A DNA stretch of 64,000 nt from positions 186,001-250,000 of the IMG/VR virus record IMGVR_UViG_3300023174_000033; one strand, written 5' to 3'. The notes beneath the pieces are model-generated. The model was not told the origin of the DNA and ran no database searches. It saw only the letters and a program-made list of their open reading frames with translations. Shown here piece after piece: positions 8,240 to 24,371 of the stretch. Every line of letters starts with the position of its first letter. Within the stretch, counting starts at the first letter, position 1. Position numbers and translations under genes: made by a program.

Positions 8240-8255
8240 TAAATAATTTTTGAAA

Positions 8256-11200
8256 ATGGCATTTAGTTACGATAAGTTTTTAAGACCAATAAGTATAGGA
8301 GATAAAAATCTATTCATTTATAATGATGATGGTGTTTTAGTTTATACTATAAATCCATATTCAGTAGTTAACACATTTACAAATAATAATTTACTAAAAA
8401 TTAGTTTGAAAAGTCAGAGGGTGATTACTTTGGATTTTTCAAATGCTGTACTTGCTAAAATAGCTTTAACTGAATTACAATCCCAAATTGATCATTTGAA
8501 GGCTAATAATCCTTTGGAAAAATTAGCAGGTCCAACTGGGGTACAAGGTTATAGTGGTCCACAAGGTCCACTTGGACCAGAGGGTGGGACCGGCCCTCCT
8601 ACAAGAAACGACGAATTCCTTAACGTAACATATTCAATAATCACCCATAGTACGGGTAAGTACCCAATAGTACAGGTTCTAGATGAACAAGGATTGATGA
8701 CCATATCTTATAATGTGAGGCATATATCCACACACTCGTTCATGGTTGAGTTTACCGAACCAACTTCTGGTACAATTATTACCGGTGGTGCTTTTGGCCC
8801 ACAAGGTGCTACAAGTTACGGTGACACTGGTCCACAAGGCCATACAGGACCACAAGGTGTTCAAGGTGGATACGGAGCTCCAGCATTGAAGACCACACTT
8901 GATGATGGGATTGGTGGCGCGACAAATTCAATAACAGTCAATCATAATTATGGTTCATATCCAATTATTCAAGCAATTTATGATGATGGTTCAAATATCT
9001 ACAGTATTCAACAAAGTTCTTATTCAATAACATATGTTGACCCAAATTCATACACGATAACTTTTGATTCTGATTATACGGGATTTGTTTTGAGTGGTGG
9101 TGGGTTAACTGGTCCACAAGGTGAATATGGATTCCAAGGTGATACTGGCCCTCAAGGTGACACAGGTCCACAAGGTGAGATTGGTCCCCAAGGTAATACT
9201 GGATTTCAGGGGGCCACTGGATTTCAAGGGGACACTGGTCCACAAGGTTTTCAAGGTTATGCTGGTACAACTGGTTTGCAGGGACCAGGTGCTCCTGGAG
9301 CATTGAATACAAAAATAATATCTTATCAGAATGGAGCAACGAATTCATTGTTGATAAATCACCAATTTGGAGCCTATCCTATAATTCAAGCAATTGATAA
9401 TTCTGGTAGAATAATAAATCCTGGTTCTTATTCAATACTTCATATAAACCAAAATTCTTATAGAATAACTTTTAATGATAATTATAGAGGTTGGGTTATA
9501 AGTGGGGGTGGACTTACTGGTCCACAGGGCCCAACTGTTGATAACGATAATCCATTATTTTTCGTACCTGGTTTCACAGCTATGTCATTTAATAGTGTCA
9601 ATACAAGTGGTACAATTTCTATATGGGGGGATATAATTCCAGCAACCGACTATACAGAGAGGGGTTACAATCTCGGTTCTCCAACAAATAGATGGGAAAA
9701 TGTCTATGTTAGAGATGCTATTGTATCATCACAATCTATTTATTTAGGGAATATTAAATTGAGTATGGGTAGCAATGTAAGTACTGGACAACCCTCGCTC
9801 GTAATTAACGATATTTTGAATGATAATTCAATAGAATTAGCACCAAATACATCAAACACCTTCTTGATTGGCTCAGCCACAATGGCTATGGAGGGTAACT
9901 TTATACCGGTAACCAGCTCTACATACGATCTTGGTACTAATGATAATCACTGGAACCATCTTTACACAAAAGATGTTGTCTTGTTAAAAGATGGTAAGTT
10001 ATTCTTTGAGTTTGACGAATCTCTATATGTTGCAGATGGTGTGTTATATGTGAACGATGTACCCTTTTCTGGGGGTGGTAGTGGATCTGGTACAATCGGC
10101 CCACAAGGTAGAACTGGTCCACAAGGTAGAACTGGCCCACAGGGTAGTACTGGACCACAAGGTAGAACTGGCCCACAGGGTAGTACTGGACCACAGGGAA
10201 TTTCTTATGAAATTGGAGAACCAATTTATTTCACTGGTGGTTCAACTGCTTTATCTTTCGATTCATCTACAATATCTTCTTGGTCAAATTTTGTTCCCGC
10301 AATTCCAAATTTGAATTTGGGATCGACAAGTTCGAGATGGTCAACATTATTCGCTGATAATATTTTTGCTAATGGTGATATCTATCTACCAGAGGGAAGT
10401 AATCTTTACATAGGTGGTCTTAAATTCTCCACTAGACTTACTGGCACTTCTGATGATTTGTTGACCGTACTAGACGCCGGGTATTATCTTGAATTAACAA
10501 CTCAAAAATATCTCTCATTTGAGAGGGGCACATCTGTAATTGTTAGTAATGGATTAGAAGATTTCTATGTTGATGATGATTATTACGAAGACACCAGTGG
10601 TGCTGTAATGTTAGCGATTGTAGATTCATACGACATAGAAACAGGAATATTGGGTTTGATCGTTGAGAGGCCAATTGGTCTCGGAAAAACTGCTAGTTCT
10701 TGGACAATAAACATTTCGGGCAGACAGGGAGTTTCTACAGGAACTGCTAGTGGTGGTGGTGGTGGTACACCAACTTTGAATATTGCTTTTTCCGCAGTTG
10801 GAAGTTATAGTGTATCACACAATAGTGGCTCTTATCCATTGATTCAGATTCTAGATAACACTGGTAATTTCTTCATACCTCATTCTATCCTGCACACTTC
10901 AACATCATCATTTGATGTATTTTTTGCGACGAGTTCTACTGGCACTATATTAGTTGGTGGTGGCAATGGGTCAATGGGGGACACTGGTCCACAGGGGGTA
11001 CAGGGATATCAAGGAGAAAATGGCCCACAAGGATTACCGGGCGAGACTGGTCCACAGGGACCAGAAGGTCCTTTTGGTGGTATGACTGCGACTGCTTCAT
11101 TTACTGAACTTACAGTCACTGGTACAACAATTTTACAACAAGTAGTTGAGAAGTTGAACACGTCTACACAATCATCAAATATTGTTTATGACTTTAACCT

Positions 11201-12128
11201 GGGTAGTATATGGTATCATAATGATTTAGCAAGTGACTATAATGCTGACTTTATAAATGTCCCAACTTATAGTAATACAGCTATTTCTACAAATATAATA
11301 ATTGAACAATCCGGAACAGGATATTTACCAACAACACTATCAATAAATGGCGCAACACAAAATATTACATGGATTGGTGGTACACCATCGATGGGGACTC
11401 CAAATGTGACTGAAATTGTTGGTTTTTCATTCATAAACTATGATGGAACTTTTGTTGATATTTTAGGACAAGTATCTAATGGTCTAGTAGCTGGTGGTGG
11501 ATCTCCTGGTCCACAAGGAAATCAAGGTCCTAAAGGTAGTACTGGTAACCAAGGTAATACTGGTCCACAAGGTGTTCAAGGAGGTGCTGGGGGTGCTACT
11601 GGTAACCAAGGTAATACTGGTCCACAAGGTTTCCAAGGTAATCAAGGAGTTCAAGGTGTGACTGGCCCACAAGGTTTTCAAGGTCTGCAAGGTCCACAAG
11701 GTAATCAAGGAGTTCAAGGTGTGACTGGCCCACAAGGGTTTCAAGGTATGCAGGGTCCTTCGATATCACCCATTGTGGGAAGTTGGAGCTTATCCGCAGG
11801 TGGAAATACTGTTAGCTTTACAGTTACTGCGGGTCAATCATATGTTATGTGGGTAAATGGAAATATCCCAAATGGTATTGTTAATTGGAATGCGACAGTT
11901 ACACTATCAAACACAAACGTACCCGCGATAGGTGCACAGTATGGGTGGTATTATATTGCAGGAAATGCTTTGGTTTTAACATCAATACCAAGTCAGATAG
12001 TTGGAAGTCCGGGAAGTATCAGTACCGCATCACCACCGATTACAAATTCAAATACCTTTACGTTTGGTATAAATAATAACAGTGGTTCATCTAAAGTAAT
12101 ATATTACGGATACACTCAAGTGAGTTAA
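8256..12128 (+). CDS. Collagen-like (Gly-X-Y) tail fibre protein
   Basis: Several GPQG/GxTG triple-helix tracts, four copies of an H-x-x-G-x-YP-x-(I/V)Q domain and three P...(Y)xLG(S/T)...W fibre motifs. ATG 8256 is preferred over TTG 8250. Confidence 0.8.
10098..10199 (+). repeat. 18-bp tandem repeat encoding GPQG(R/S)T
   Basis: Five-plus copies of ggNccacaRggtagWact inside the collagen gene. Confidence 0.8.
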
Positions 12129-12149: not shown

Positions 12150-14423
12150 ATGTTTAGTAGACTTTCTAATTTTTCCGGACCTCTTAGTCGTTTTTCTAGT
12201 GGGGGTTTAGGGGAGGCGCAACCAAATCTATTATTAAGTTTAGATTCATTCAACTATGATTTATATGGCAAATCATTTACTTTTGATCCAGTTAATAACT
12301 ATGGTGTAACTTTTAGTTCCAATACAGTAACAGCATTAATTTCTGAAGGATGGAATCCATATGCTCGTTCAGTCCAATCATATAATGGACCTGTTAAATT
12401 AAAATTTCAAAGGGGTTCAGTTTCTGGACCATTGATGTGTGGTTTATCTAATTTAAGCGAGGTTGTGACTTACACTAACGTAAATTTTGGGTTTTATATA
12501 CAAACTGATAATTTGGTAACAATAGTTGAAAATCAAAGTAATTTATCAAATGTTGTGCCTTTTTTTCAAATATATGAAATATCTGGAACATTTTCATCAT
12601 CTACTATTTATAGTATTATTTTTGATGGGATAAGGGTTAGGTATTATATTGATGATGTTTTAGTGTATACATCATATTCTAGTCCAATGGTTACTCCTTT
12701 ATACTTATTTGTAACATTTTTAAATACTGCTGGGTTAGGTTTGACTAATATTGAATTTGGTTCATTTTCTCCTGTTTGGAATGACACATCTGGTAATGAT
12801 AGAAACTTTACTCTTGTGGGCGCACCAAGATATGCGAATAATTCTTTTAAATTTGATAGTGATTCAAGTCAATATGCAACAGGTAGTGATCTTGGAACAT
12901 TAAATCAATTCACTGTTGATACTTGGTTTAAGTTAAATTCATTACCAGCAACTGAATTTAATATACCACAAATTGTAACCGATATTTATGAAGCTGGTGG
13001 CAATTTAAACTTTTCATTGGGCTTTCAAACCGATTTCAAAATATTTGGCGGTTTCTTTATCTTCCCAATTTGGTATTATACGGATGGGTTTACACCAGAA
13101 ATTGATACTTGGTATAATGTTACTTTAACATATGATCAAGAACATCTGAATTTATATTTAAATGGTAATATTTATTCTTCTACTAGTTATGCTCTACAAG
13201 TATCTTCAGGTGGATTGGGTATTAACATAGGAAAACGATTTGATTTATCAGAATTTATAGATGGTCAGATTGATGTTGTTAAGATATGGGATGGATCATT
13301 AACATCAACTCAAATTTTAAATAACTATAATAGTATCAATACAAGATATATCTCTGCCACTACTAGCATAGTATTAAATGGTAGTTCCGCCATTGAAGTT
13401 CCTAGAGGTAACGATTTAGCATTAGGTACTAGTTATACTATAGAATTTTGGAGTAAAGCTGCAACTATGAGTACCCCTGGTCGAATTTTCACTGTTATGG
13501 CTCAAAGAGATGGTGATTCCAATATAGATATATTCTACCAATCTGGTAATTTAATTATCAGAAATGGTCAGAATGTAACTGCTGAACCAACTCCTGGTGT
13601 TTGGACACACGTTGCTATAGTATCAAACAATACCACTCTATCAGTATATTACAATGGTGTTGCTCAATCTGTTTCTGGTAATGGTGGCAATCTACAAGAT
13701 AATAGATTTCCTTTAGCAATTGGTTCTAGAGGACCTTACAATAATTTCCAATATTTTAATGGTTCTTTATATGGTATAAGAATAAATAATACTGTAGTTT
13801 ATACAACAGATTTCAACCCATATGAAGTTGCCCTACCACCAGCTAATATTCCTGGCACAGTTCTATTAATTAATGAATATCAAGTTTCCACTGGTAACTT
13901 TATAGATTCAACTTATAATAAATCTTTAGTTAATAAGGGTGCCACACATTCTACAGATGTGCCAGAAATACCTCAGTATCGATATCTCAGATGGGTAATG
14001 ACTCAAACAAGAGGTGCTGATTTTTTAGCGGGTGCAATACAAGTTGCTAGTTTGGTTTTATTATACCAGGGAGCTACAGTTAGTTGGGGTCCATCCGCAA
14101 GTGCTAGTAACCCGGATGGAACTACATTCCCTAATGAAACACCAATAAAGATTTTAGATTCTAATATATATACAAAATGGTGTAATACAATTTTTGGAAC
14201 TACAAGTTTTGGAACAGCAAGTATCTACATAGATAATGTTAATCCATTAAGATTTGACTCTTATTATTATGTGACTGCTAATGATGAAGAAATAAGAGAT
14301 CCTGTCAGTTGGACCTTAGCTGTTTCAAATGATAATTCTACTTGGTCAATACTAGATACTCGGTCAAATGTTGGTATAACTTATAGTAGACAAGCAAACA
14401 CACAGATATTTAATATATCTTAG
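12150..14423 (+). CDS. Fibre/receptor-binding protein with concanavalin A/LamG-like lectin domains
   Basis: Two LamG-like signatures (FTVDTWFK...WYNVTLTYD...LYLNG...IG...FIDGQIDVVKIW and YTIEFW...WTHVAIV...YYNG) plus a C-terminal F5/8-like segment (DPVSWTLAVSND..TW..LD). Confidence 0.75.
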   Translation: MFSRLSNFSGPLSRFSSGGLGEAQPNLLLSLDSFNYDLYGKSFTFDPVNNYGVTFSSNTVTALISEGWNPYARSVQSYNGPVKLKFQRGSVSGPLMCGLSNLSEVVTYTNVNFGFYIQTDNLVTIVENQSNLSNVVPFFQIYEISGTFSSSTIYSIIFDGIRVRYYIDDVLVYTSYSSPMVTPLYLFVTFLNTAGLGLTNIEFGSFSPVWNDTSGNDRNFTLVGAPRYANNSFKFDSDSSQYATGSDLGTLNQFTVDTWFKLNSLPATEFNIPQIVTDIYEAGGNLNFSLGFQTDFKIFGGFFIFPIWYYTDGFTPEIDTWYNVTLTYDQEHLNLYLNGNIYSSTSYALQVSSGGLGINIGKRFDLSEFIDGQIDVVKIWDGSLTSTQILNNYNSINTRYISATTSIVLNGSSAIEVPRGNDLALGTSYTIEFWSKAATMSTPGRIFTVMAQRDGDSNIDIFYQSGNLIIRNGQNVTAEPTPGVWTHVAIVSNNTTLSVYYNGVAQSVSGNGGNLQDNRFPLAIGSRGPYNNFQYFNGSLYGIRINNTVVYTTDFNPYEVALPPANIPGTVLLINEYQVSTGNFIDSTYNKSLVNKGATHSTDVPEIPQYRYLRWVMTQTRGADFLAGAIQVASLVLLYQGATVSWGPSASASNPDGTTFPNETPIKILDSNIYTKWCNTIFGTTSFGTASIYIDNVNPLRFDSYYYVTANDEEIRDPVSWTLAVSNDNSTWSILDTRSNVGITYSRQANTQIFNIS

Positions 14424-14781: not shown

Positions 14782-15657
14782 ATGTATTCAATCTTTCACT
14801 GTGAGGGTGGTATAGGCAAAAATATTTTAGCTACTGCAGTCGTATCATCACTCAAAAGCTCAGATCCTGACAGACAAATTATAGTTGTTTCTGCTTGGCC
14901 ACAAGTTTGGTTTAATAATCCTGATGTCCATCAGATTTACCCAATGGGTCAAGTTGCAAACTTCTATAAAAATTACGTAAAGGACAAAGATACTAAAGTC
15001 TATCGTCTTGAACCATACCACACAGAGGATTATATCCTCAACAAGAAACACTTAATTAAAATTTGGTGTGATTTACTTGGAGTGGATTGGAATGGTTCAG
15101 GACCTAGACTTTATTTTTCGCCCCTAGAACTAGAGTATATAAAAATAAAAATGCTGAATGGTGTTACTAAACCAATATTTTTATTACACACAAACGGTGG
15201 CGGTGGTCAAGGTCGACCATATTCTTGGTACAGGGATTTGCCAACACCAAATGCTTTAGATGTAGTTGAACACTTTAAAAGTGATTACCATATCTATCAC
15301 ATTGGTTATGAGGGTCAGCAAGTCTTAAATGGTTGCCATAAACTAACATTAGAAACAAGGGAAATATTAGCAGCTATCAATTTTTCACAAAAAAGACTTT
15401 TAATTGATTCATTCTCCCAACATGCCTCAGCAGCATTTGATTTAAAATCTGTTGTTTGTTGGGTTGGTAATGATTCATCAGTTCTTGGATATAATACAAA
15501 CGTGAATATCAAACCAAATATTGAACCTAAGTTTGATACATTACATTCATCTTATCTTGATGATTTTGATATTGGTGGTAATCCAGTTCAATTTCCTTAT
15601 GATAAATTAAGACTATTCGACTCAAATGAACTAATAAAAGAACTAAATAATTTATGA
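14782..15657 (+). CDS. GT-B glycosyltransferase, GT9/heptosyltransferase-like
   Basis: N-terminal GGIGK..(S)LK...PD..IIV...P..FNNP pattern, R(D)LP motif, and C-terminal IDSFSQHASAAF matching the GT9 DS..MHLAAA motif. Confidence 0.65.
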   Translation: MYSIFHCEGGIGKNILATAVVSSLKSSDPDRQIIVVSAWPQVWFNNPDVHQIYPMGQVANFYKNYVKDKDTKVYRLEPYHTEDYILNKKHLIKIWCDLLGVDWNGSGPRLYFSPLELEYIKIKMLNGVTKPIFLLHTNGGGGQGRPYSWYRDLPTPNALDVVEHFKSDYHIYHIGYEGQQVLNGCHKLTLETREILAAINFSQKRLLIDSFSQHASAAFDLKSVVCWVGNDSSVLGYNTNVNIKPNIEPKFDTLHSSYLDDFDIGGNPVQFPYDKLRLFDSNELIKELNNL

Positions 15658-16472
15658 GAAAAATCCATTACATATCTGGATTGCCAAGAAGTGGTTCAAC
15701 CCTTCTAACAAATATCCTTCTCCAAAACCCAAAAATCCAAACAACGGCAACTTCTTCTTTATTGGAGTTCATGTTGCAGGTCAGGGACAATTGGACAAAA
15801 CTAGAAGGACATACAGCACATCCAGATGGTCAAGATAAGTGGGCTGTTATTAAAAGTATTATGCAAACTTATCACAAAACAGATAAGGAAATTATTATTG
15901 ATAAAAACAGAGGATGGTCAAACCATATTGAGTTTGTTGAAAAGGTTACTGGTGAACCAGCGAGGATAATTGCTTGTGTTAGAAATCTTGAAGAAGTATG
16001 TGCTTCATTTGAAAAACTTTATAGGAAAAATAGAGCTAGTGGTGAAATTCATGGTGAGTTCTCAAACCCTAAAATGAAAACAATTGATGGTCGTGTATCT
16101 GTATGGACTTCTGACGAAGGCGTACTCGGTAGACCTTATGTATCTTTATTGGATACTGTTCAGAGAGGACTTGGTGATAGAATTTTATTCTTCCCATATG
16201 AGGAGTGGACAAATCAACCAAACAAATGGTTTAAAGCTCTTTATGATTTCCTTGGTGAAGAATATTATCAACATGACTTTGATAACATCGAACAAACTAT
16301 TAGGGAAAACGATGCTGGGTATGGTTGGGGATCTGATCTACATGAAATTAAAACTGGTAAGTTAAGACCAGCTGCATCTGAAGCTATTCAAGTAATTGGT
16401 AGAGATTGGTCTACAAAACTCCACAACACCGAGTTTTGGAAAAAGAAGAACGAAAAAAAGAGTATCATTTGA
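15654..16472 (+). CDS. PAPS-dependent sulfotransferase
   Basis: 5'-PSB loop SGLPRSGSTLL, DKNR, 3'-PB motif IACVRNLEEVCASF, YEE...P...LYDFLG. Overlaps the upstream GT (ATGA). Confidence 0.85.
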   Translation: MRKIHYISGLPRSGSTLLTNILLQNPKIQTTATSSLLEFMLQVRDNWTKLEGHTAHPDGQDKWAVIKSIMQTYHKTDKEIIIDKNRGWSNHIEFVEKVTGEPARIIACVRNLEEVCASFEKLYRKNRASGEIHGEFSNPKMKTIDGRVSVWTSDEGVLGRPYVSLLDTVQRGLGDRILFFPYEEWTNQPNKWFKALYDFLGEEYYQHDFDNIEQTIRENDAGYGWGSDLHEIKTGKLRPAASEAIQVIGRDWSTKLHNTEFWKKKNEKKSII

Positions 16473-16484
16473 TACTCTTTTTTT
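16453..16484. terminator. Bidirectional intrinsic terminator
   Basis: aaaaaaagagtatc-attt-gatactcttttttt between convergent genes. Confidence 0.8.
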
Positions 16485-16924
16485 TATCTACCAAGTTTAC
16501 CAAACTTAAACCACAATCTCTCATGGAAGAAATATAGTATCATTTTGGTTAGGACTTCTGTACCACCAATGGCCATTCCGATTTTCCAATCACCAGTGAT
16601 TAGCGCACTTAATATCATAGTATCAATAGTCCCAACGATTCTCCAAGTTATAGTTTTAGCTAGGTGTCTAGCTACAAAGTTATCAGGCTTCTTATAATCT
16701 ATATGAGCTACCCCATCTTTAATTGTCAGTACTCCTTTACAGGTAACATGCCATTTTTCACCAACACCTTCAATATAATCTTTGGTTGTTTTGGTCTCAG
16801 CATTGATAATAATATCAGATACTTGGATTTCTTCACCATCACGAAGTAATCTCCATCTGTTAGAATCATCAGTAGATACTGTGTTGTACCTAATTTGAAA
16901 TACTTGTTCTTTATTAGAGTTCAT
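16484..16924 (-). CDS. DUF2061-type membrane protein fused to an unknown N-terminal domain
   Basis: C-terminal RHLAKTITWRIVGTIDT...E..TK..LYFFHERLW is the DUF2061 pattern. Start moved to MNSNKEQ (16924) because the ORF-track start lies in the promoter region. Confidence 0.7.
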   Translation of the reverse strand: MNSNKEQVFQIRYNTVSTDDSNRWRLLRDGEEIQVSDIIINAETKTTKDYIEGVGEKWHVTCKGVLTIKDGVAHIDYKKPDNFVARHLAKTITWRIVGTIDTMILSALITGDWKIGMAIGGTEVLTKMILYFFHERLWFKFGKLGR

Positions 16925-16942
16925 AATTAATATATAAATCAT

Positions 16943-17827
16943 ATGAATAATGTTGTAATTTATTGTATAAAAAATATATTAACAGAAAAAGTTTACATTG
17001 GATCAGCGATTGATTACAAATCAAGATGGAGAAATCACAAGAACCAATTGAAGAATAATTTCCACCATAATATCAAATTACAAAATTCTTGGAATTTATA
17101 TGGTGATAATTCTTTTCTATTTGAAATATTAGAATATGTTGAAGATAAAAATATATTGATAGAAAGAGAACAATACTATTTAAACACAATATTATTTGCT
17201 TCAGAAAATGATGATAGATTTGATAAGTTGGGATATAATATATTGCGAGAAGCTGGAAATTCTATGGGTTATAGACATAGTACTGAAACTATTCTAAAAT
17301 TAAAAGGTGAAAATAATCCAATGTTTGGTAAATCTGTTTGGATTGGTAGGAACCACACTGAAGAATCAAAGGAATTAATATCTTTATCAAAGAAAGGTAA
17401 GTTAATAAAAAGTGATAACCACTTTTATAATAAAAATCATACTGATGAATCTAAAATAAAAATGTCCTTTAGTAGTAAAAGATTGTCTGGTTCTGATAAT
17501 CCAAATTTTGGTAAAGAATCCAAAAACAGAAAAATAGTAATACAACTTGATAAAAGTGGAAAAATAATAAAAGAGTGGTCACATGCTGGAGAAGCATCCA
17601 AAGCTTTGAGTATAAACTCACAGAATATAGGAGCTTGTTGTTTGGGTAAACAAAAAACTTATAAAGGTTTTATGTGGCAATATAAAATTGAAAAAGTAAA
17701 GAGTGACTCTGAAATCCAATTAGAAATTATATCATTGTATAACGAGACAAATATTACACAAAGAGAGATTTGTAAATTATACAAAATGTCTCCAAATAAA
17801 GTATCAAAACTATTAAAGACAACTTAA
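16943..17827 (+). mobile_element. Free-standing GIY-YIG homing endonuclease with NUMOD3/NUMOD1-like DNA-binding motifs
   Basis: VIYCIKN...KVYIGSA...RW..H...L...H.N..LQ.SW..YG...E..REQYYL...GYN, repeated H(T/S)xE(S/T)K..(I/M)S and NPMFGK motifs, and a C-terminal A.K.L.I....I..CC.GK.KTYKGF.W segment. Inserted antisense within the cysC operon. Confidence 0.85.
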
Positions 17828-17843
17828 GTTGTCTTTAATAGTT
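17808..17843. repeat. Perfect 36-bp palindrome at a convergent gene junction
   Basis: aactattaaagacaacttaagttgtctttaatagtt. Both flanking ORFs end in LLKTT* and share the central TTAA. Confidence 0.9.
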
Positions 17844-18243
17844 CTACTAAACTCTCATGTATTGATTCACTAACAAATTCTTTCCAAGAATCGTCATCAT
17901 TTCTAATTTTATACCTAATTTCCGTGGCTGAAATATTCGCAATATTTGAATCAACAATTATTTCTTCGACTCGATATCCCACGCCCCTTCCGTAATTAAC
18001 AGACGCAATATCTGGTATGATAATTATCTTAACCAATCCCCTTTCTATTTCATTTCCATATACTTTTTCCCAAAGTGATTTAACTTCTTCTGGTGTGAAT
18101 GGGTTTTTTTCATCTGTTGGTACATCTCGTATCATTATTAATACGGGTTCATTAATGTCCAAAAATTTAGAAAAAATTGTTTGATGTCCTTTGTGTGGAG
18201 TTTGGTACCTTCCTATAAATGCGTTGTATGGTTTTGTGTTCAT
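17824..18243 (-). CDS. HIGH/HxGH-family nucleotidylyltransferase (cytidylyltransferase-like); candidate minimal ATP sulfurylase
   Basis: FIGRYQTPHKGH, NPF, YGRGVGY and ISATEIR motifs. Overlaps the cysC stop codon. Confidence 0.7.
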   Translation of the reverse strand: MNTKPYNAFIGRYQTPHKGHQTIFSKFLDINEPVLIMIRDVPTDEKNPFTPEEVKSLWEKVYGNEIERGLVKIIIIPDIASVNYGRGVGYRVEEIIVDSNIANISATEIRYKIRNDDDSWKEFVSESIHESLVELLKTT

Positions 18244-18827
18244 TTTATATAATTTTTATTTTTTAGATATTGTATTAAAAAATCAACATTCTTTTCAATA
18301 TCTTCTTCTACATTATTTTCCAAATGGATAGCATTTTTTGGAATCTCAAATGGTGATGAAATACCCGTGAAATCTTTAATCTCACCAGCTCTTGCTTTTT
18401 TGTACAAACTTTTTGGATCTCTTGTCTCACAAGTCTCAAGTGATGCATCCACAAAAACCTCTGCAAATCTTTCACCAATAATTTCTTTTGATAATTGTCT
18501 ATTTGATTCAAAGGGTGAAATAAAAGAACAAATAACAATAAGTCCAGCATCATTCATAAGTTTACAAACTTCGGCGACTCTTCTTAGGTTTTCAATTCTA
18601 TCTTCATCTGAAAATCCAAGGTTTTTATTCAAACCAAGTCTTGTGTTATCACCATCCATTATGTAAGTGTGGTGACCCATTTCAAAGAGTTTTGATTCGA
18701 GTACATTTGCAATTGTGGATTTTCCAGAGCCAGAAAGGCCAGACATCCATATAGTGCAGGATTTTTGATTTTTCAAAGTTTCTCTGTCTACTTTGGATAC
18801 TTTGAAATCGTGCTTAGTTATATTCAT
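18240..18827 (-). CDS. cysC: Adenylyl-sulfate (APS) kinase
   Basis: IWMSGLSGSGKST P-loop, DGDN.R.GL..NLGFS.EDR.EN.RRVAEV, FISP, RDPK.LYKKARAGEIK.FTGISSPFE.P. Confidence 0.95.
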   Translation of the reverse strand: MNITKHDFKVSKVDRETLKNQKSCTIWMSGLSGSGKSTIANVLESKLFEMGHHTYIMDGDNTRLGLNKNLGFSDEDRIENLRRVAEVCKLMNDAGLIVICSFISPFESNRQLSKEIIGERFAEVFVDASLETCETRDPKSLYKKARAGEIKDFTGISSPFEIPKNAIHLENNVEEDIEKNVDFLIQYLKNKNYIK

Positions 18828-18914: not shown

Positions 18915-21900
18915 ATGTCAACTTACAGTTTAACCCTTAGACAAGATGTGGGAAGGAAATTAACGATTCAAGAACTGGATCATAACTTTCTATATCTTGA
19001 AGATCTCACATCAGAAGGTGGTGGTTCAGTAAATTTACCAAAAGGATATGTGGTCATTGGTGGTGGTCTGACAGGATCAGCAACTGGATCAGAATCGTTC
19101 ACATTTGATAGTACAAAACAAAATATAATAGTTGGTTATAGCTCCAATATTACTGGAACTACATCGTATTCATCTATCGTGGGTGGTACGGATAACACAA
19201 TAGATTTATCTTCTAAATCTGGTATATTTTCTGGTGTTAGTGCTAAAATTTGTAATAATTCAGAAAGGTCTGTAATTATTGGTGGTTCACAAGATAAGAT
19301 TTTAGATTATTCTTGTAGGTCAACTGTTATTGGCGGTTTTAGAAACTGTATTACTGATTTTTCTTGTAATTCTTCTGTAATGGCTGGATGTTGTAATAAA
19401 GTTCAATGTAATTCTTGTAATTCATCTATTATGGGTGGATGTTGCAATACAATTTGTGATAATTCTTGTGCTTCAAGTATAGTAGGGGGATATAGAAACA
19501 CCATCTGTTACGAATCTGATTATTCATCAGTAATTGGTGGGTGTTGTAATAGAATCTGTGATTACTCTGACCACTCAGGTATATTCTCAGGTGGTTGGAA
19601 TAAGATACAATATTCTGACAAATCAGTTGTATTAGGTGGTAATAACAACCACATATGTATTTATTCTGATAGGTCTGGTGTTTTAGCTGGACGATGTAAT
19701 CAAATCATTGGTTTTTCTAATTATTCAACAATTGTGGGTGGATGTTGTAATGGAATAGCTTACTATTCTTGTTCATCAACCATCACTGGTGGTAGTTGTA
19801 ATTTTATTGTTGGTAGAATTGGTGGTCCATCTGCATCTTGTTATGGATCTTGTGATTCATCAATAATTGGTGGGTGTTGTAACCATATTTATGACCAATC
19901 TATGGCTTCTTCAATATTGGGTGGATGTTGTAATTCAATTACTTGTCAAACTTGTAATTCAAGTGTGTTAGGTGGTATATGTAACACAATTACTTGCCAA
20001 AGTTGTAACTCATCAGTTATTGGTGGGTGTTGTAATACTATTTACTATTCAAGTCAATCCACAATAGTTGGTGGTCAATGTAACCAAATCTGTGGATATT
20101 GGGATAGTAATTGTGAACCTAATTATAATTCAATCATTGGTGGTTGTAGAAACTGTATAGTTACTTCTGACTACGCTTCTATTATTGGTGGATATTGTAA
20201 TTGTATAATGGGATATGATGGTGATTACTCATCTATCATTGGTGGTGGTTATAATACCATTTGTTATAACTCACAACATTCTTCTATAGTTGGTGGGCAT
20301 TATAATACAATTTATACTTCTAACTTCTCATCTGTGATTGGTGGATGTTGTAACTGGATTTGTGACTATAGTTGCAGCTCAATAATTGCAGGTGGCCACT
20401 ATAACTACATTTTTAATTCTTGTTGTTCAGCAATGGTTGGTGGATATGAAAGTTGTATCTGTGACGAATCTTGTCTTTCAACTGTTATTGGGGGTTCTAG
20501 AAACTGTGTTATTGACAATTCTTGTGGATCATCTATTTTAGGCGGTAATTGTAATAGAATCTGCTGTTCTAATAATTCTGTAATTATTGGTGGTTCAAAC
20601 TTAACATTAGCTACTCAAAGTAACACAGTTTTAGTTCCCTATCTAAAAATTAATAATTTAGATCAGTGTAACGCTAATACGAAAATCCTAGTCGTTGATA
20701 GTCAAGGTAATGTAAATTACAGAACTGCTGAGTCTTTAGGTGGTGGTGCTTCTCTATATGGAATTAATAATATTTTGACTGATACTACATTTTCAAACAT
20801 ATTGGGTGGTAATGCAAATAGAATAACCTGTGTTTTTTCATCTTCAATATTAGGTGGTTATCAGAACTCTATTTGTTGTTATTCTGATAATTCAACAATA
20901 GTTGGTGGTTCTGCTAACCTAATCAGTGAAAATTCTGATTCTTCAACAATAGTTGGTGGTTATGAGAATTCTATTTGTTGTTTTTCATCCTATTCTTCAG
21001 TAATAGGTGGAGCCAATAACAGAATATGTGATAATTCTTGTCAATCAAGTATAGTAGGTGGTGGTTGTAATGTGATTTATTTTGATTCAGGGTATTCATC
21101 TGTGATTGGTGGGTGTTGTAATAGAATCTGTGATAATTCTTGTAATTCTGGTATATTCTCAGGTGGTTGGAATAAGATACAATATTCTAGTAAATCAGTT
21201 GTATTAGGTGGTAATAATAACCACATATGTTACTATTCAGATAGGTCTGGTATATTAGCTGGTCGTTGTAATCAAATTAAAGATTATTCTTATTATGCAT
21301 CAATCGTTGGTGGTAGATGTAATAAAATTTGTGGAAAGGAATGTCTTTGTGACCCAGGGTTCTTGTATGGTTCCTGTGAATCTACTATAATTGGTGGATG
21401 TTGTAACAGTATTTGCGATACATCTTTTAGGTCATCTATCTTAGGAGGGTCTTGTAACACAATCACTTGTCAAAGTTGTAATTCCACTATTATGGGTGGT
21501 TATGAAAATGATATTAAAGAAAGGTCTAAAAATAGTACCATAATTGGTGGTGGATGTAACACAATTGGTGTTTGTTACACAAATCCAGTTTGTAATTCAG
21601 CTATTATATCTAGTTATGGAAGCTGTATAGAAAACTATACTTGTAATTCAACTATACTAGGTGGTGCTAATAATAAAATTTCTGGTGACTATGTAGTTGG
21701 CCCAACTGGAGATAGATCTAATGGTGATACTGTAATAGGTGGATATCGTAATACAATATGTTATAATTCATGTTACTCATCAATTGTTGGTGGTAGATGT
21801 AACCTAATCTGTGATAATTCTGATTCTTCTTCAATTGTTGGTGGATGTTGTAATAGAGTTTATTGTTCTGATAATTCAACAATCACTGGTGGTTGTTTCA

Positions 21901-24371
21901 ATGTAATTGAACAAAACTCATTTAGATCAACAATATCTGGTGGTGATTGGAACTCAATCGAAAGTTGTTCTAATAAGTCTGGTATCTTTGCTGGTGCTGG
22001 TAACCACATCTGTGATTACTCACAGAGGTCAGTAATTGTTGGTGGACACTGTGCTAGAATAACACAAGATTCGTGTAGATCAACAGTATCTGGTGGTTTT
22101 AGAAACTGTATCAGAGTTGACTCTTGTGATTCAGCTATTGTTGGTGGATACTGTGGTCAAATCTGTGAATCTAGCTGCAAAGCAACTATTATTGGTGGTG
22201 AATGTAATGAAGTACTTTATAATTCAAACAACTCTTCAATAATTGGAGGTCGTTGTAATACCATCTACAGTGCTGTTAATTCAGCAATAGTTGGTGGTTG
22301 TAACTTATACTTAAGTACTTCTAACACTGTATTGGTTCCTAAATTGAGAATTAATAGTGTTATAAACTCACCATCTGATGATACAATCTTAACAAGAGAT
22401 AATTCAGGAAATGTAAACTTTAGGTCAGTTGCTTCATTACAACCAAGTTTTGGTGGTATAATTAATGGTGCTACTGAATCAATGACTGGTTTTATGAACC
22501 AGATTTGTAACTCAAATAACTCATCAGTTATTGGTGGTTCTTATAACTGTGTTTGTTGTTCTTCTAATCAATCATCAATAATTGGTGGTTACAGTAATGC
22601 AATTAATTTTTACTCAGTAAACTCAACAGTATTAGGTGGTACTGATAATAAAATTTGTTGTTCAGTCGTATCATCTATAATTGGTTCATATGTTTCTATT
22701 ATAACAAAATCAGTTGCTTCCAATATTATGGGTGGGGCTGGAAATCAAATACGTTGTTGTTCTAGTGGTTCATCCATTATTGGCGGACAAGGTAACGGTG
22801 TTTTATACTACTCTTGTGGTTCATCTGTAGTTGGTGGATGTTGTAATGCGGTAGTTTATGGGTCTAATGTATCATCAGTAATTGGTGGTTCTTGTAACAT
22901 AATCTATTCTAGTGACCATTCATCAATAGTAGGTGGTTCGTGTAATTGTGTTACTTACTGTTCTGATAGAAGTTCCATTTTAGGTGGATGTTGTAATAAA
23001 GTATGTAGCTATTCTTGTTACTCATCGATAATTGGTGGTGCGTGTAATCAAATTTGTGGAGCATTCTATGGTTATGGTTATGGTCCAGGAGGTTATCAAT
23101 ATGGTTCTTGTTATTCATCTATAGTAGGTGGAAAGTGTAATAGAGTAATGTTTGACTCAAGCTATTCATCTGTAATTGGTGGGTGTAGAAATGAAATTTG
23201 TACATACTCTGACAACTCATCAATTTTTGGTGGATGTAGTAACTACATAGGTTGTGAAGTTAATATGTCCTCAATAATTGGTGGATATGAAAACAATATC
23301 TACTGTCGTTCTTGTAGATCTACTATTGTTGGTGGATATAGTAATAACATATCATATGGTTCATGTGATTCAACTATAGTAGGTGGATATGATAACTACA
23401 CTACTTCTTACAGTAAATATTCAACTATAGTTGGTGGTTATAATAACTCTATTTGTGCATATTCTTGTAATACAACAATCTCAGGTGGTTGTGGAAATCA
23501 AATTTGTTCATACTCTTGCAACTCATCTATATTTGGTGGTAGTTGTAACTGTATCTGTGGTTGGAATGGACCTGGTCCAACGTTTGTTTTTGGATCTTGT
23601 AATTCTACTATTGTCGGTGGGTGTTGCAATAGAATTCAAAGAGATTCTAGTTTCTCAAGTATTATTGGTGGGTGTTGCAATACGGTTGATTATTACGCCG
23701 ATTTTTCAACAGTTATTGGGGGTTATAGAAATATAGTAAACGATGGTTCATGTTATTCATCTGTAATAGGTGGTTGTTGTAATAGAATCTGTTATAGTTC
23801 AGAACACTCCGGTATATTTGGTGGTGGTTGGAATAAAATTGAACGTTCAGACAAATCTGTTGTGTTGGGTGGTAATAATAACCACATATGCCAAAATTCT
23901 GAAAGGTCTGGCATCTTAGCTGGTCGTTCCAATCTAATTAAAGATTATTCTTGTTATGCATCAATCGTTGGTGGTTGTCGTAATAATGTTTGTTACTACT
24001 CTTGTTCTTCTGCTGTGATAAGTGGTTGTTGTAATATGATATGTGACTATAGTTATACTTCAACTATAATTGGCGGAGCTTGTAACTGTATTTGTAACTC
24101 TTGTTGTTCAACTATAATTGGTGGATGTTGTAATACAATAAATCAAGATACAAATAACTCAGTCATACTTGGTGGTGTTGGACTTTGTTTAACATCAAGC
24201 AATAGTAATACTGTTTATGTTCCAACACTTATGACTACTACTATTTCAAATGTGAACCCTGTTTCTTGGAAACTCGGTACAACAGCTTCTGGTTCAGTAA
24301 CTGTTGATACGACACAATATATTGAAGTTTCGATAAATGGTGTTATATACAAACTGGCAGTTGTTCAATAA
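18915..24371 (+). CDS. Very Cys-rich beta-helix/beta-roll fibre protein (about 15-aa S-S-I-I-G-G-C-C-N repeat)
   Basis: 1818 aa. N-terminal LRQ..GR.LT..ELD.NF.YL fibre anchor, then three long repeat blocks separated by NTV(L/Y)VP.L linkers. AATATATA at 18881..18888. Confidence 0.75.
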   Translation: MSTYSLTLRQDVGRKLTIQELDHNFLYLEDLTSEGGGSVNLPKGYVVIGGGLTGSATGSESFTFDSTKQNIIVGYSSNITGTTSYSSIVGGTDNTIDLSSKSGIFSGVSAKICNNSERSVIIGGSQDKILDYSCRSTVIGGFRNCITDFSCNSSVMAGCCNKVQCNSCNSSIMGGCCNTICDNSCASSIVGGYRNTICYESDYSSVIGGCCNRICDYSDHSGIFSGGWNKIQYSDKSVVLGGNNNHICIYSDRSGVLAGRCNQIIGFSNYSTIVGGCCNGIAYYSCSSTITGGSCNFIVGRIGGPSASCYGSCDSSIIGGCCNHIYDQSMASSILGGCCNSITCQTCNSSVLGGICNTITCQSCNSSVIGGCCNTIYYSSQSTIVGGQCNQICGYWDSNCEPNYNSIIGGCRNCIVTSDYASIIGGYCNCIMGYDGDYSSIIGGGYNTICYNSQHSSIVGGHYNTIYTSNFSSVIGGCCNWICDYSCSSIIAGGHYNYIFNSCCSAMVGGYESCICDESCLSTVIGGSRNCVIDNSCGSSILGGNCNRICCSNNSVIIGGSNLTLATQSNTVLVPYLKINNLDQCNANTKILVVDSQGNVNYRTAESLGGGASLYGINNILTDTTFSNILGGNANRITCVFSSSILGGYQNSICCYSDNSTIVGGSANLISENSDSSTIVGGYENSICCFSSYSSVIGGANNRICDNSCQSSIVGGGCNVIYFDSGYSSVIGGCCNRICDNSCNSGIFSGGWNKIQYSSKSVVLGGNNNHICYYSDRSGILAGRCNQIKDYSYYASIVGGRCNKICGKECLCDPGFLYGSCESTIIGGCCNSICDTSFRSSILGGSCNTITCQSCNSTIMGGYENDIKERSKNSTIIGGGCNTIGVCYTNPVCNSAIISSYGSCIENYTCNSTILGGANNKISGDYVVGPTGDRSNGDTVIGGYRNTICYNSCYSSIVGGRCNLICDNSDSSSIVGGCCNRVYCSDNSTITGGCFNVIEQNSFRSTISGGDWNSIESCSNKSGIFAGAGNHICDYSQRSVIVGGHCARITQDSCRSTVSGGFRNCIRVDSCDSAIVGGYCGQICESSCKATIIGGECNEVLYNSNNSSIIGGRCNTIYSAVNSAIVGGCNLYLSTSNTVLVPKLRINSVINSPSDDTILTRDNSGNVNFRSVASLQPSFGGIINGATESMTGFMNQICNSNNSSVIGGSYNCVCCSSNQSSIIGGYSNAINFYSVNSTVLGGTDNKICCSVVSSIIGSYVSIITKSVASNIMGGAGNQIRCCSSGSSIIGGQGNGVLYYSCGSSVVGGCCNAVVYGSNVSSVIGGSCNIIYSSDHSSIVGGSCNCVTYCSDRSSILGGCCNKVCSYSCYSSIIGGACNQICGAFYGYGYGPGGYQYGSCYSSIVGGKCNRVMFDSSYSSVIGGCRNEICTYSDNSSIFGGCSNYIGCEVNMSSIIGGYENNIYCRSCRSTIVGGYSNNISYGSCDSTIVGGYDNYTTSYSKYSTIVGGYNNSICAYSCNTTISGGCGNQICSYSCNSSIFGGSCNCICGWNGPGPTFVFGSCNSTIVGGCCNRIQRDSSFSSIIGGCCNTVDYYADFSTVIGGYRNIVNDGSCYSSVIGGCCNRICYSSEHSGIFGGGWNKIERSDKSVVLGGNNNHICQNSERSGILAGRSNLIKDYSCYASIVGGCRNNVCYYSCSSAVISGCCNMICDYSYTSTIIGGACNCICNSCCSTIIGGCCNTINQDTNNSVILGGVGLCLTSSNSNTVYVPTLMTTTISNVNPVSWKLGTTASGSVTVDTTQYIEVSINGVIYKLAVVQ

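Follow-up and report, generated by a model that had tools for sequence, protein, structure and literature searches.

To our knowledge, only two types of ATP sulfurylase, the enzyme that makes APS and PPi from ATP and sulfate, are recognised: the homo-oligomeric Sat type (Pfam PF01747, e.g. Thermus 1V47 and yeast 1J70) and the heterodimeric CysD/CysN type, in which CysD has a PAPS_reduct/ATP-pyrophosphatase fold and works with a GTPase partner. Sat enzymes are about 390 aa long, with a PUA-like N-terminal domain, carry the motifs QxRNPxHxxH, GRDHAG and (I/L)S(A/G)TxxR, and belong to the HIGH-motif nucleotidyltransferase superfamily. In bifunctional PAPS synthases (Sat-CysC and CysN-CysC fusions), the APS-forming enzyme is joined to APS kinase so that APS is consumed at once. 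The archaeal NMN adenylyltransferases (NMNAT/NadM, TIGR01527; MJ0541, PDB 1F9A; 1EJ2) belong to the same superfamily and serve in NAD synthesis. In Campylobacter jejuni, Cj1416 and Cj1415 pair a nucleotidyltransferase with a CysC homologue that 3'-phosphorylates the product to give a phosphoramidate donor for capsule synthesis, a pathway that also needs a glutamine kinase and an amidohydrolase and yields a CDP-phosphoramidate (PMC11800397). Metagenomic surveys report phages that encode cysC, describe them as large and transcriptionally active, and treat cysC as a lone booster of host assimilatory sulfate reduction (e.g. PMC10914622).

Here we examine a 139-aa HxGH protein encoded next to cysC in a 64,000-nt stretch of viral DNA (the window; positions 186,001 to 250,000 of IMG/VR record IMGVR_UViG_3300023174_000033). 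A preliminary description made from the sequence alone proposed that this protein is a stripped-down enzyme making APS for CysC, and as such an unrecognised class of ATP sulfurylase. What it observed in the sequence is confirmed in every particular that we examined. The ORF starts with ATG, and bases 18240-18243 read tcat on the plus strand, so that the start codon overlaps the TGA stop of the upstream cysC as ATGA. The three motifs it named are present: GRYQTPHKGH at residues 11-20, YGRGVG at 84-89 and ISATEIR at 104-110. The absence of Sat and CysD extends from the window to the whole 464,605-bp record, a T4-like jumbo phage (CheckV 98% complete), in which we find no match to PF01747, PF01507 or TIGR02039; CysN was not searched on its own. 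The ORF is not a chance frame, as it has more than 2,858 homologues in 90%-identity clusters, all about 132-143 aa, and 1,005 representatives of 50%-identity clusters at E<=1e-3. Across 135 diverse domains, G11, R12, H17, G19, H20, R39, P48, G85, R86, V88, G89, S105, T107 and R110 are at least 90% conserved. Source annotations of the homologues say NMNAT or NaMNAT. A megablast of the region against deposited phages found no match. The features of the locus are collected in the table.

Features of the candidate sulfate-activation locus (window coordinates)
Coordinates	Strand	Feature	Support
14782..15657	+	291-aa ORF of unknown family, possibly GT9-like glycosyltransferase (a lead only), travelling with the module	No Pfam hit; homologue in 29/80 viral module loci and in L109, the syntenic, endonuclease-free relative; atlas features link it to viral clusters that partly carry PF01075
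15654..16472	+	PAPS-type sulfotransferase, likely consumer of the module's product	PF13469 at 57.5 bits, PF00685 at 42.6 bits; PRSGST 5'-phosphosulfate-binding loop in the translation; only sulfotransferase in the genome
16484..16942	-	DUF2061 protein (about 90-aa N-terminal part plus two-helix DUF2061 domain), third conserved component of the module	PF09834 at 1.2e-21; directly follows the HxGH gene in L109
16943..17827	+	GIY-YIG/NUMOD3 homing endonuclease inserted between the HxGH and DUF2061 genes; not a functional part of the module	PF01541 and PF07460; absent from L109, where cysC, HxGH and DUF2061 are contiguous
17808..17843	.	36-bp perfect palindrome spanning the convergent stop codons of the HxGH and endonuclease genes; terminator-like	Both proteins end in LLKTT
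17824..18243	-	139-aa HxGH nucleotidyltransferase, proposed sulfate adenylyltransferase (APS-forming)	AF2 model pLDDT 88.5; NMNAT-like predicted fold
18240..18827	-	cysC, canonical APS kinase, translationally coupled to the HxGH gene	PF01583 at 214 bits (1.3e-63); NF003013 at 255 bits (cut-off 163); TIGR00455 at 228.6 bits (cut-off 138.7); only APS kinase in the phage

By sequence and predicted fold, the protein is a shortened relative of archaeal NMNAT and not a truncated Sat. It has the superfamily hallmarks, a Rossmann-like fold with an N-terminal HxGH and a C-terminal SxTxxR (H17-x-G-H20 and S105-A-T-x-x-R110, at least 96% conserved), although PF01467 scores only 19.3 bits for this copy, just under the 21-bit cut-off, while matching 33 of 39 diverse relatives. 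Structural comparison of the model gives Z of 13.5, 13.0 and 11.8 to NMNAT, PPAT and NadM (VIA Z 13.5 with rmsd 2.8 A over 130 residues for NMNAT), against Z 7-10 for Sat, with the Thermus structure at 10.1. Profile-profile alignment with hhalign gives 98.5% probability (E 2.6e-15) to NMNAT, with the GRxQPxHxGH, NP, PDI, GY and SxTxIR elements aligned, and a profile search recovers 1F9A at E 4e-7. Against 10 Sat sequences, hhalign gives a probability of 17%, over the C-terminal half only. The window protein has no PF01747 hit, no QxRN motif (there is no R-N before the HxxH) and no PUA-like N-domain, being a single domain about a third the size of Sat (MGIII forms are 112-114 aa); 12 of 39 diverse relatives give weak PF01747 hits (best E 6.4e-6), and one relative, P0184, reaches 26 bits against a cut-off of 24.3. 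Nor does the protein resemble CysD (PF01507, TIGR02039). The motif argument of the preliminary description does not carry the case: HxGH and ISxTxxR are common to the whole superfamily, GRxQPxHxGH is the archaeal NMNAT form, and the proposed equivalence of YGRGVG with the VGRD of Sat is rejected on the only, weak, alignment available, where the GRDHAG loop falls on PDIASV; in NMNAT the position of YGRGVG reads F(K/R)xAGY. The protein is not a standard NMNAT either. It scores 30.9 bits against a cut-off of 181.2 for TIGR01527 and 38.1 bits against 127 for NF002243, with only residues 9-80 aligned. A 25-residue segment after strand 3, following PDI, is deleted, which removes a helix and the VYSGN strand, the NMNAT GSAQ motif is replaced by I-R-D with the nearly invariant R39, and the GRxVG loop is conserved (R39 and G85-R86 at least 94% over the 135 domains). 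The two arginines, R39 and R86, are family-specific. In 1EJ2, the nicotinamide contacts (Ile81, Asn84, Trp87) reportedly lie at and just after the PDI motif, and Trp87 falls in the deleted segment.

The functional proposal rests on comparative genomics, which supports it in every test that we could run. Amongst the 150 best representatives of the 50%-identity clusters, 51 are fused to APS kinase, 38 in the order CysC-NT and 13 as NT-CysC (NT being the HxGH domain), and 2 are NT-DUF2061; phrog_10255 is a fusion with APS kinase. APS kinase is adjacent or fused on the same strand in 68 of 80 cellular loci and in 74 of 80 viral loci, often with DUF2061 and a sulfotransferase. The viral loci include DUF2061 in 60 cases and a sulfotransferase in at least 33, and none has Sat or CysH. 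In the closest relative, L109, cysC, NT and DUF2061 overlap. DUF2061 is fused to CysC in Chitinophagaceae. In 50 carrier genomes, we find APS kinase in 50, Sat in 4 and CysD in 3, whereas in 150 sampled Chitinophagaceae without the gene, 55 have APS kinase, of which 41 have CysD and 13 have Sat. That is 7/50 against 54/55 (Fisher p = 6.9e-21). Most carriers are MAGs or SAGs for which we had no completeness values. Restricting the comparison to the 15 large Chitinophagaceae-type carriers gives 1/15 (p = 1.1e-12), and these include a complete 4.74 Mb chromosome (G009) with cysC, the gene and a sulfotransferase-like neighbour but no Sat or CysD. An independent context is provided by Nitrospirales, where in 5 of 5 loci the order is sulfite reductase, CysH, NT with no kinase adjacent, and that CysH has the CC...CxxC cysteines of Fe-S type, APS-using reductases. 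(TIGR02039 does not detect CysH, as the Nitrospirales genomes scored nothing with it, and CysH was assessed with PF01507.) The gene is not needed for NAD: NadD is present in 44 of 45 bacterial carriers, a separate true NMNAT is found in 3 of 5 archaeal carriers, and the phage has no NAMPT. The remaining solo loci are not informative, with TerB-like and M23 peptidase neighbours in Marinoscillum, and SAM synthetase and AdoHcy hydrolase neighbours in one MGIII locus.

Our preferred interpretation, which we consider probable, is that the 139-aa protein is a sulfate adenylyltransferase of a class not recognised so far, a minimal HIGH-motif enzyme derived from the archaeal NMNAT/NadM lineage. The interpretation of the preliminary description is thus supported, with the two corrections given above on motifs and on descent. 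A canonical sat or cysD elsewhere in the genome had been named in advance as evidence that would overturn the idea, and none was found. In this view, the enzyme keeps the ATP-handling elements GRxQPxHxGH and ISATxIR, and R39 and R86 hold a small dianion. APS would pass to CysC, and PAPS would feed the neighbouring sulfotransferase, probably with a glycosyltransferase-like partner, so that the phage could sulfate some acceptor without the sulfate-activation genes of the host. The operon originally also included the DUF2061 gene, and is now split by the homing endonuclease. What our analysis demonstrates is the gene structure, the homology, the fold (on a predicted model), the fusions, the neighbourhoods and the phyletic patterns, while the catalytic activity, for which there is no biochemical evidence, the roles of R39 and R86, whose position in the pocket we did not measure, the role of DUF2061 and the identity of the acceptor are inferred. 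Electrostatics were not mapped on the model. Some observations weigh against this reading. The nearest relatives by sequence and structure are NMN adenylyltransferases and PPAT, and similarity to Sat is only at the superfamily level. Seven of 50 carriers also have Sat or CysD, and the Nitrospirales carriers have a Sat-CysC fusion as well, so the gene is not always the only candidate. Without a GTPase partner, the enzyme would depend on CysC, an APS reductase or a pyrophosphatase to pull an unfavourable reaction, as Sat does. In Sano-like phages, the fusion sits among early genes with no sulfotransferase in view. Literature searches on DUF2061, on novel, phage- or sulfotransferase-associated and cytidylyltransferase-like ATP sulfurylases, and on NMNAT with APS kinase found no description of this family as a sulfurylase, with most subscription journals outside their reach.

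Other explanations seem to us unlikely. The database annotation, an NMN or NaMN adenylyltransferase for NAD synthesis or salvage that merely happens to lie next to cysC, has in its favour the best sequence and fold matches, but these fall far below the family cut-offs, the active site is remodelled, the 51 independent-looking fusions are to APS kinase with none seen to NAD enzymes, carriers keep their own NadD or a true NMNAT, and it does not explain why carriers lack Sat and CysD; we regard it as very unlikely. Slightly less improbable, though still unlikely, is that the pair makes a PAPS-like donor that is not PAPS, by joining AMP or another NMP to a different anion or phospho-compound that the CysC-like kinase then 3'-phosphorylates. 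The Campylobacter pathway is a precedent, the partner kinases in Marinimicrobia and MGIII archaea are short and divergent (E about 1e-17, covering positions 3-110 of 152), and the Sano-like fusions lack a nearby sulfotransferase. However, the kinase in the window passes equivalog-level APS kinase thresholds and its neighbour is a PAPS-type sulfotransferase. The five conserved module genes (the GT-like ORF, the sulfotransferase, CysC, the HxGH protein and DUF2061) include nothing that resembles a glutamine kinase or a gamma-glutamyl-CDP-amidate hydrolase, although dedicated models for these were not used and homology of Cj1416 to this family was not tested. The Nitrospirales context and the anticorrelation with Sat/CysD both point specifically to sulfate.

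The least likely alternative is that the protein is an accessory or regulatory partner of APS kinase, such as an APS- or PAPS-binding, proofreading or PAP-recycling subunit, with APS coming from elsewhere (the CysDN of the host or an unknown enzyme). For the phage alone a host ATP sulfurylase could supply APS, and a predicted complex of the HxGH protein with CysC, scoring 0.00, gave no information either way. The conservation of the catalytic residues over the whole family fits an active transferase, 43 of 50 cellular carriers have an APS kinase but no known APS source, and in Nitrospirales the gene occurs in a reductive operon without an adjacent kinase. A known defence-system reading is not supported, as PADLOC gave no hits for the five module proteins.

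If the activity is real, it arose independently of Sat within the superfamily. The reaction and the logic of coupling it to APS kinase, to which Sat too tends to be fused or adjacent, are already known; what would be new is a different, much smaller APS-forming domain, usually accompanied by DUF2061. We consider it likely, with slightly less assurance than for the phage protein itself, that a third, independently evolved class of ATP sulfurylase exists, a 112-139-aa NMNAT-derived nucleotidyltransferase that together with APS kinase and usually a DUF2061 protein forms a compact PAPS (or APS) synthase. It would be the only sulfate-activating enzyme in many Chitinophagaceae, marine Flavobacteriales, Marinimicrobia, MGIII archaea and at least several hundred phages, where it has been mis-annotated as NMN adenylyltransferase. 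Metabolic reconstructions score sulfate activation by the presence of Sat or CysDN, and many abundant uncultured lineages now read as unable to make APS or PAPS would be re-scored, including SAR406/Marinimicrobia, MGIII archaea, marine Flavobacteriales and activated-sludge Chitinophagaceae. The puzzle of orphan APS kinases would be solved, and DUF2061 would gain a first functional context. At 112-139 aa, it would be the smallest known sulfate-activating enzyme, useful for PAPS regeneration in biocatalysis, and a clear case of a nucleotidyltransferase changing its acceptor from a mononucleotide to an inorganic anion. Phage cysC, now counted as an auxiliary gene for host sulfur assimilation, would instead belong to a self-sufficient module of candidate sulfurylase, kinase, DUF2061 and sulfotransferase, whose lack of CysH points to sulfation rather than assimilation, and which implies sulfated glycans or other sulfated products in phage infection.

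The gene described in the preliminary description is real, and the observation holds as it was made. The ORF encodes 139 aa and starts with an ATG that overlaps the stop codon of the upstream gene as ATGA (bases 18240-18243 read tcat on the plus strand). The upstream gene is a canonical APS kinase, with scores of 214 bits for PF01583, 255 bits for NF003013 against a cut-off of 163, and 228.6 bits for TIGR00455 against a cut-off of 138.7. The three motifs reported for the protein, GRYQTPHKGH (residues 11-20), YGRGVG (84-89) and ISATEIR (104-110), are all present. The window covers bases 186001-250000 of a 464,605-bp virus record estimated to be 98% complete. The record has a T4-type Gp23 capsid gene and no NCLDV capsid gene, so it is a jumbo myovirus-like phage of the T4-like kind. 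A canonical sat or cysD gene linked to the module from elsewhere had been named in advance as a finding that would count against the proposed function, and we searched the whole record for one. It has no Sat (PF01747) and no gene of the CysD/CysH family (PF01507); CysN was not searched for on its own. It includes one APS kinase and one sulfotransferase, but no NAMPT and no second HIGH-type nucleotidyltransferase. The coordinates of the features are collected in the table below.

Features of the module, its surroundings in the phage, and related loci in other genomes (locus labels precede the coordinates where these are not window positions)
Position	Strand	Feature	Details
8250-12128	+	1292-aa ORF	full of collagen-like G-x-y (GPQG) repeats
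12150-14423	+	757-aa ORF	its relative in L109 has Laminin_G_3
14782-15657	+	291-aa ORF	no Pfam match
15654-16472		sulfotransferase	PAPS-type, PRSGST loop
16453-16484		terminator-like hairpin	14-bp stem with A/T runs on both sides, between the convergent sulfotransferase and DUF2061 genes; looks like a bidirectional terminator
16484-16942	-	DUF2061 protein	extra N-terminal part of about 90 aa with no family match
16943-17827	+	GIY-YIG + NUMOD3 homing endonuclease	on the opposite strand between the HxGH and DUF2061 genes; its start abuts the DUF2061 start with zero spacing
17808-17843		36-bp perfect palindrome	spans the convergent stop codons of the HxGH and endonuclease genes
17824-18243	-	HxGH protein (NT)	candidate ATP sulfurylase
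18240-18827		cysC	canonical APS kinase
18915-24371	+	1818-aa ORF	cysteine-rich repeats of roughly 20 residues
about 60021-60785	-	T4-type major capsid protein	Gp23 family, 604-aa frame; record positions 246021-246785
L042 2647-6420		Nitrospirales unit	sulfite reductase with C-terminal TusA domain, Fe-S type CysH and HxGH gene
L095 1450-1794	-	MGIII archaeal copy of the family
L096 1396-1734	-	MGIII archaeal copy of the family
L107 3593-4330		kinase-HxGH fusion	Xylella phage Sano gp35
L108 3611-4342		kinase-HxGH fusion	Stenotrophomonas phage DLP_6

By homology, the protein is a shortened enzyme of the NMNAT lineage and not a truncated Sat. Pfam gives only a sub-threshold CTP_transf_like hit (19.3 bits against 21), and NCBIfam gives sub-threshold hits to archaeal NMN adenylyltransferase over residues 9-80 (38 bits against 127, and 31 bits against 181). 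A family profile built from an alignment of 29 sequences finds the MJ0541/1F9A NMNAT at E 4e-7 among solved structures. An AlphaFold model of the protein has pLDDT 88.5, and its best structural matches are archaeal NMNAT (Z 13.5, rmsd 2.8 A over 130 residues), PPAT (Z 13.0) and NadM (Z 11.8). Sat catalytic domains come lower, with Thermus 1V47 at Z 10.1 and others at 7-8.5. A profile-profile comparison with three genuine archaeal NMNATs taken from carrier genomes gives a probability of 98.5% and E 2.6e-15. There is one large difference, a 25-residue deletion directly after the conserved PDI of strand 3, which removes a helix and the VYSGN strand of NMNAT; the gap is also visible in the match to the solved structure. 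The same comparison with ten Sat sequences gives a probability of only 17%, and in that alignment the GRDHAG of Sat falls on PDIASV and not on YGRGVG. The preliminary description had compared the motifs of the protein with those of Sat. Those equivalences are either superfamily-wide (HxGH, ISxTxxR) or unsupported (YGRGVG with VGRD).

Across 135 diverse domains of the family, the residues conserved at 90% or more are G11, R12, H17, G19, H20, R39, P48, G85, R86, V88, G89, S105, T107 and R110. R39 sits where NMNATs have the GSAQ motif, and the G85-R86 pair is essentially invariant, whereas NMNATs are variable at that position. We read the lost segment plus two new fixed arginines as a change of acceptor from a mononucleotide to a small anion. 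This is an inference, because the coordinates of the model were not inspected. In the 1EJ2 structure, the nicotinamide contacts of NMNAT reportedly lie at or within the deleted stretch.

The family is large. It has more than 2,858 clusters at 90% identity, all about 132-143 aa and variously labelled NMNAT, NaMNAT, “adenylylsulfate kinase” or hypothetical, 1,005 representatives at 50% identity, at least 576 viral contigs and 116 species genomes. Four independent lines connect it to sulfate activation. Fusion to, or adjacency with, APS kinase had been put forward beforehand as a way of examining the proposal, and both are found. Among the 150 best representatives, 38 are CysC-NT fusions, 13 are NT-CysC and 2 are NT-DUF2061. 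The PHROG family phrog_10255, about 36% identical to the window protein, is such a fusion. It occurs in cultured Xylella, Stenotrophomonas and Xanthomonas phages, annotated as “kinase”, “adenylylsulfate kinase” or “hypothetical protein”. In the Sano-like phages it lies among early and nucleotide-metabolism genes; in Sano the neighbours include a MazG-like pyrophosphatase and an annotated cysteine dioxygenase. No sulfotransferase is nearby in these Sano-like phages. This branch is divergent but experimentally accessible.

The neighbourhoods give the second line. In 68 of 80 cellular loci, APS kinase is adjacent or fused on the same strand, and one more locus has a divergent adjacent kinase. In 80 viral loci, APS kinase is adjacent in 74, DUF2061 is present in 60, a sulfotransferase in at least 33 and a homologue of the 291-aa ORF of the window in 29, and none has Sat or CysH. 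In Chitinophagaceae the operon consists of a DUF2061-CysC fusion, then NT, then a weakly sulfotransferase-like 321-aa gene. DUF2061 also occurs fused to the HxGH domain, and this is to our knowledge the first functional context for this domain of unknown function. In the closest relative of the window (locus L109, 79% identical), which is syntenic, cysC, NT and DUF2061 overlap one another and the endonuclease is absent. The endonuclease of the window is therefore a mobile insertion that splits that operon. Because the palindrome spans both stop codons, the HxGH protein and the endonuclease end in the same pentapeptide, LLKTT. The palindrome scores as a terminator-like hairpin on the minus strand; we have not distinguished whether it came with the endonuclease or is its target site. 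Short forms of the pair also occur. The MGIII archaeal copies L095 and L096 are only 112-114 aa and end right after ISATxIR, and the partner APS-kinase-like genes in Marinimicrobia and MGIII carriers (genomes G022, G028 and G032-G041) are about 150-170 aa, matching only positions 3-110 of the Pfam model. We have no data on whether these minimal pairs still make PAPS.

The third line is phyletic complementarity. In 50 carrier genomes, all 50 have an APS kinase match (49 over the Pfam cut-off), while Sat is found in 4 and CysD in 3. Most of these carriers are MAGs or SAGs for which we have no completeness values. As a control, we sampled 150 Chitinophagaceae relatives of the complete carrier chromosome G009. 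None of them has the gene, and 55 have APS kinase. Of those 55, 41 have CysD, and 13 of the remaining 14 have Sat next to cysC; the one exception has its cysC at a contig edge. A known ATP sulfurylase therefore accompanies APS kinase in 54/55 non-carriers but in only 7/50 carriers (Fisher p = 6.9e-21). Among the 15 large Chitinophagaceae-type carriers the figure is 1/15 (p = 1.1e-12). CysH-family genes occur in only 6/50 carriers, and in most carriers the product must therefore serve sulfation, not assimilation.

The fourth line is a second context, without an adjacent kinase. In all five Nitrospirales loci (L038, L039, L042, L044 and L046), the gene directly follows a sulfite reductase (NIR_SIR + TusA) and a CysH. 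That CysH carries the CC...CxxC and ECGLH signatures, which in assimilatory APS reductases mark the Fe-S enzymes that reduce APS directly. The operon needs exactly one more activity to run from sulfate to sulfide, which is APS formation. These Nitrospirales also have a Sat-CysC fusion elsewhere in the genome, and they may therefore have two parallel sulfate-activation routes.

Taken at face value, the database annotation would make the protein an NMNAT, but this reading is disfavoured. The scores are far below the cut-offs and the acceptor side is remodelled. NadD is present in 44/45 bacterial carriers and a separate true NMNAT in 3/5 archaeal carriers, the phage has no NAD-salvage partner, and none of the fusions seen involves an NAD enzyme. 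A PAPS-like but different donor, by analogy with Campylobacter Cj1416/Cj1415 (PMC11800397), remains possible for divergent branches, namely the short kinases of Marinimicrobia and MGIII and the Sano-like phage fusions. It does not fit the window, where the kinase passes equivalog thresholds and the neighbour is a PAPS-type sulfotransferase, and it explains neither the Nitrospirales operon nor the anticorrelation with Sat/CysD. A non-catalytic accessory role is unlikely given the conserved catalytic motifs and the lack of any other APS source in 43/50 carriers; a prediction of the complex gave no verdict. As for a defence system, the module matches no PADLOC model.

The protein would work like a Sat, with the same proposed reaction, the same superfamily and the same habit of fusing with CysC. 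It does not satisfy the criteria for membership in Sat, CysD or NMNAT, and it satisfies only the definition of the superfamily. The source annotations, PHROGs, NCBIfam and the ESM-Atlas cluster names call it NMNAT, cytidylyltransferase, kinase or hypothetical. No paper describes it in the literature we searched, a collection without most subscription journals, and metagenomic work treats phage cysC as a lone assimilatory auxiliary gene (PMC10914622). We therefore regard it as a new class of a known enzyme activity within a known fold superfamily. The interpretation in the preliminary description, a small enzyme making APS for CysC, is supported by the comparative evidence, and we are fairly confident of this function. 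What the analysis shows is the gene, its homology and the comparative patterns; the reaction itself, which was not assayed, is inferred from them, and seven carriers also have a classical sulfurylase.

In the mechanism we propose, the enzyme binds ATP through GRxQPxHxGH and ISATxIR, as other HIGH-motif transferases do. It would bind sulfate in the pocket vacated by the deleted NMN-binding segment, using R39 and R86, and form APS + PPi. The reaction is unfavourable, so in this view the enzyme is kept next to, translationally coupled with, or fused to a consumer, which is APS kinase in most lineages and APS reductase in Nitrospirales. DUF2061 is a two-helix hydrophobic domain that occurs fused to either partner; it may tether or organise the pair, although no role is known for it. 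Three very large ORFs that flank the module (1292, 757 and 1818 aa) are probably virion fibre or surface proteins and conceivable targets of glycosylation or sulfation, but the acceptor has not been identified. In this phage, PAPS would then feed the adjacent sulfotransferase. The co-travelling 291-aa ORF may build the acceptor that is sulfated; Atlas features link it weakly to viral clusters that partly carry Glyco_transf_9 (GT9 glycosyltransferases), which suggests a sulfated glycan.
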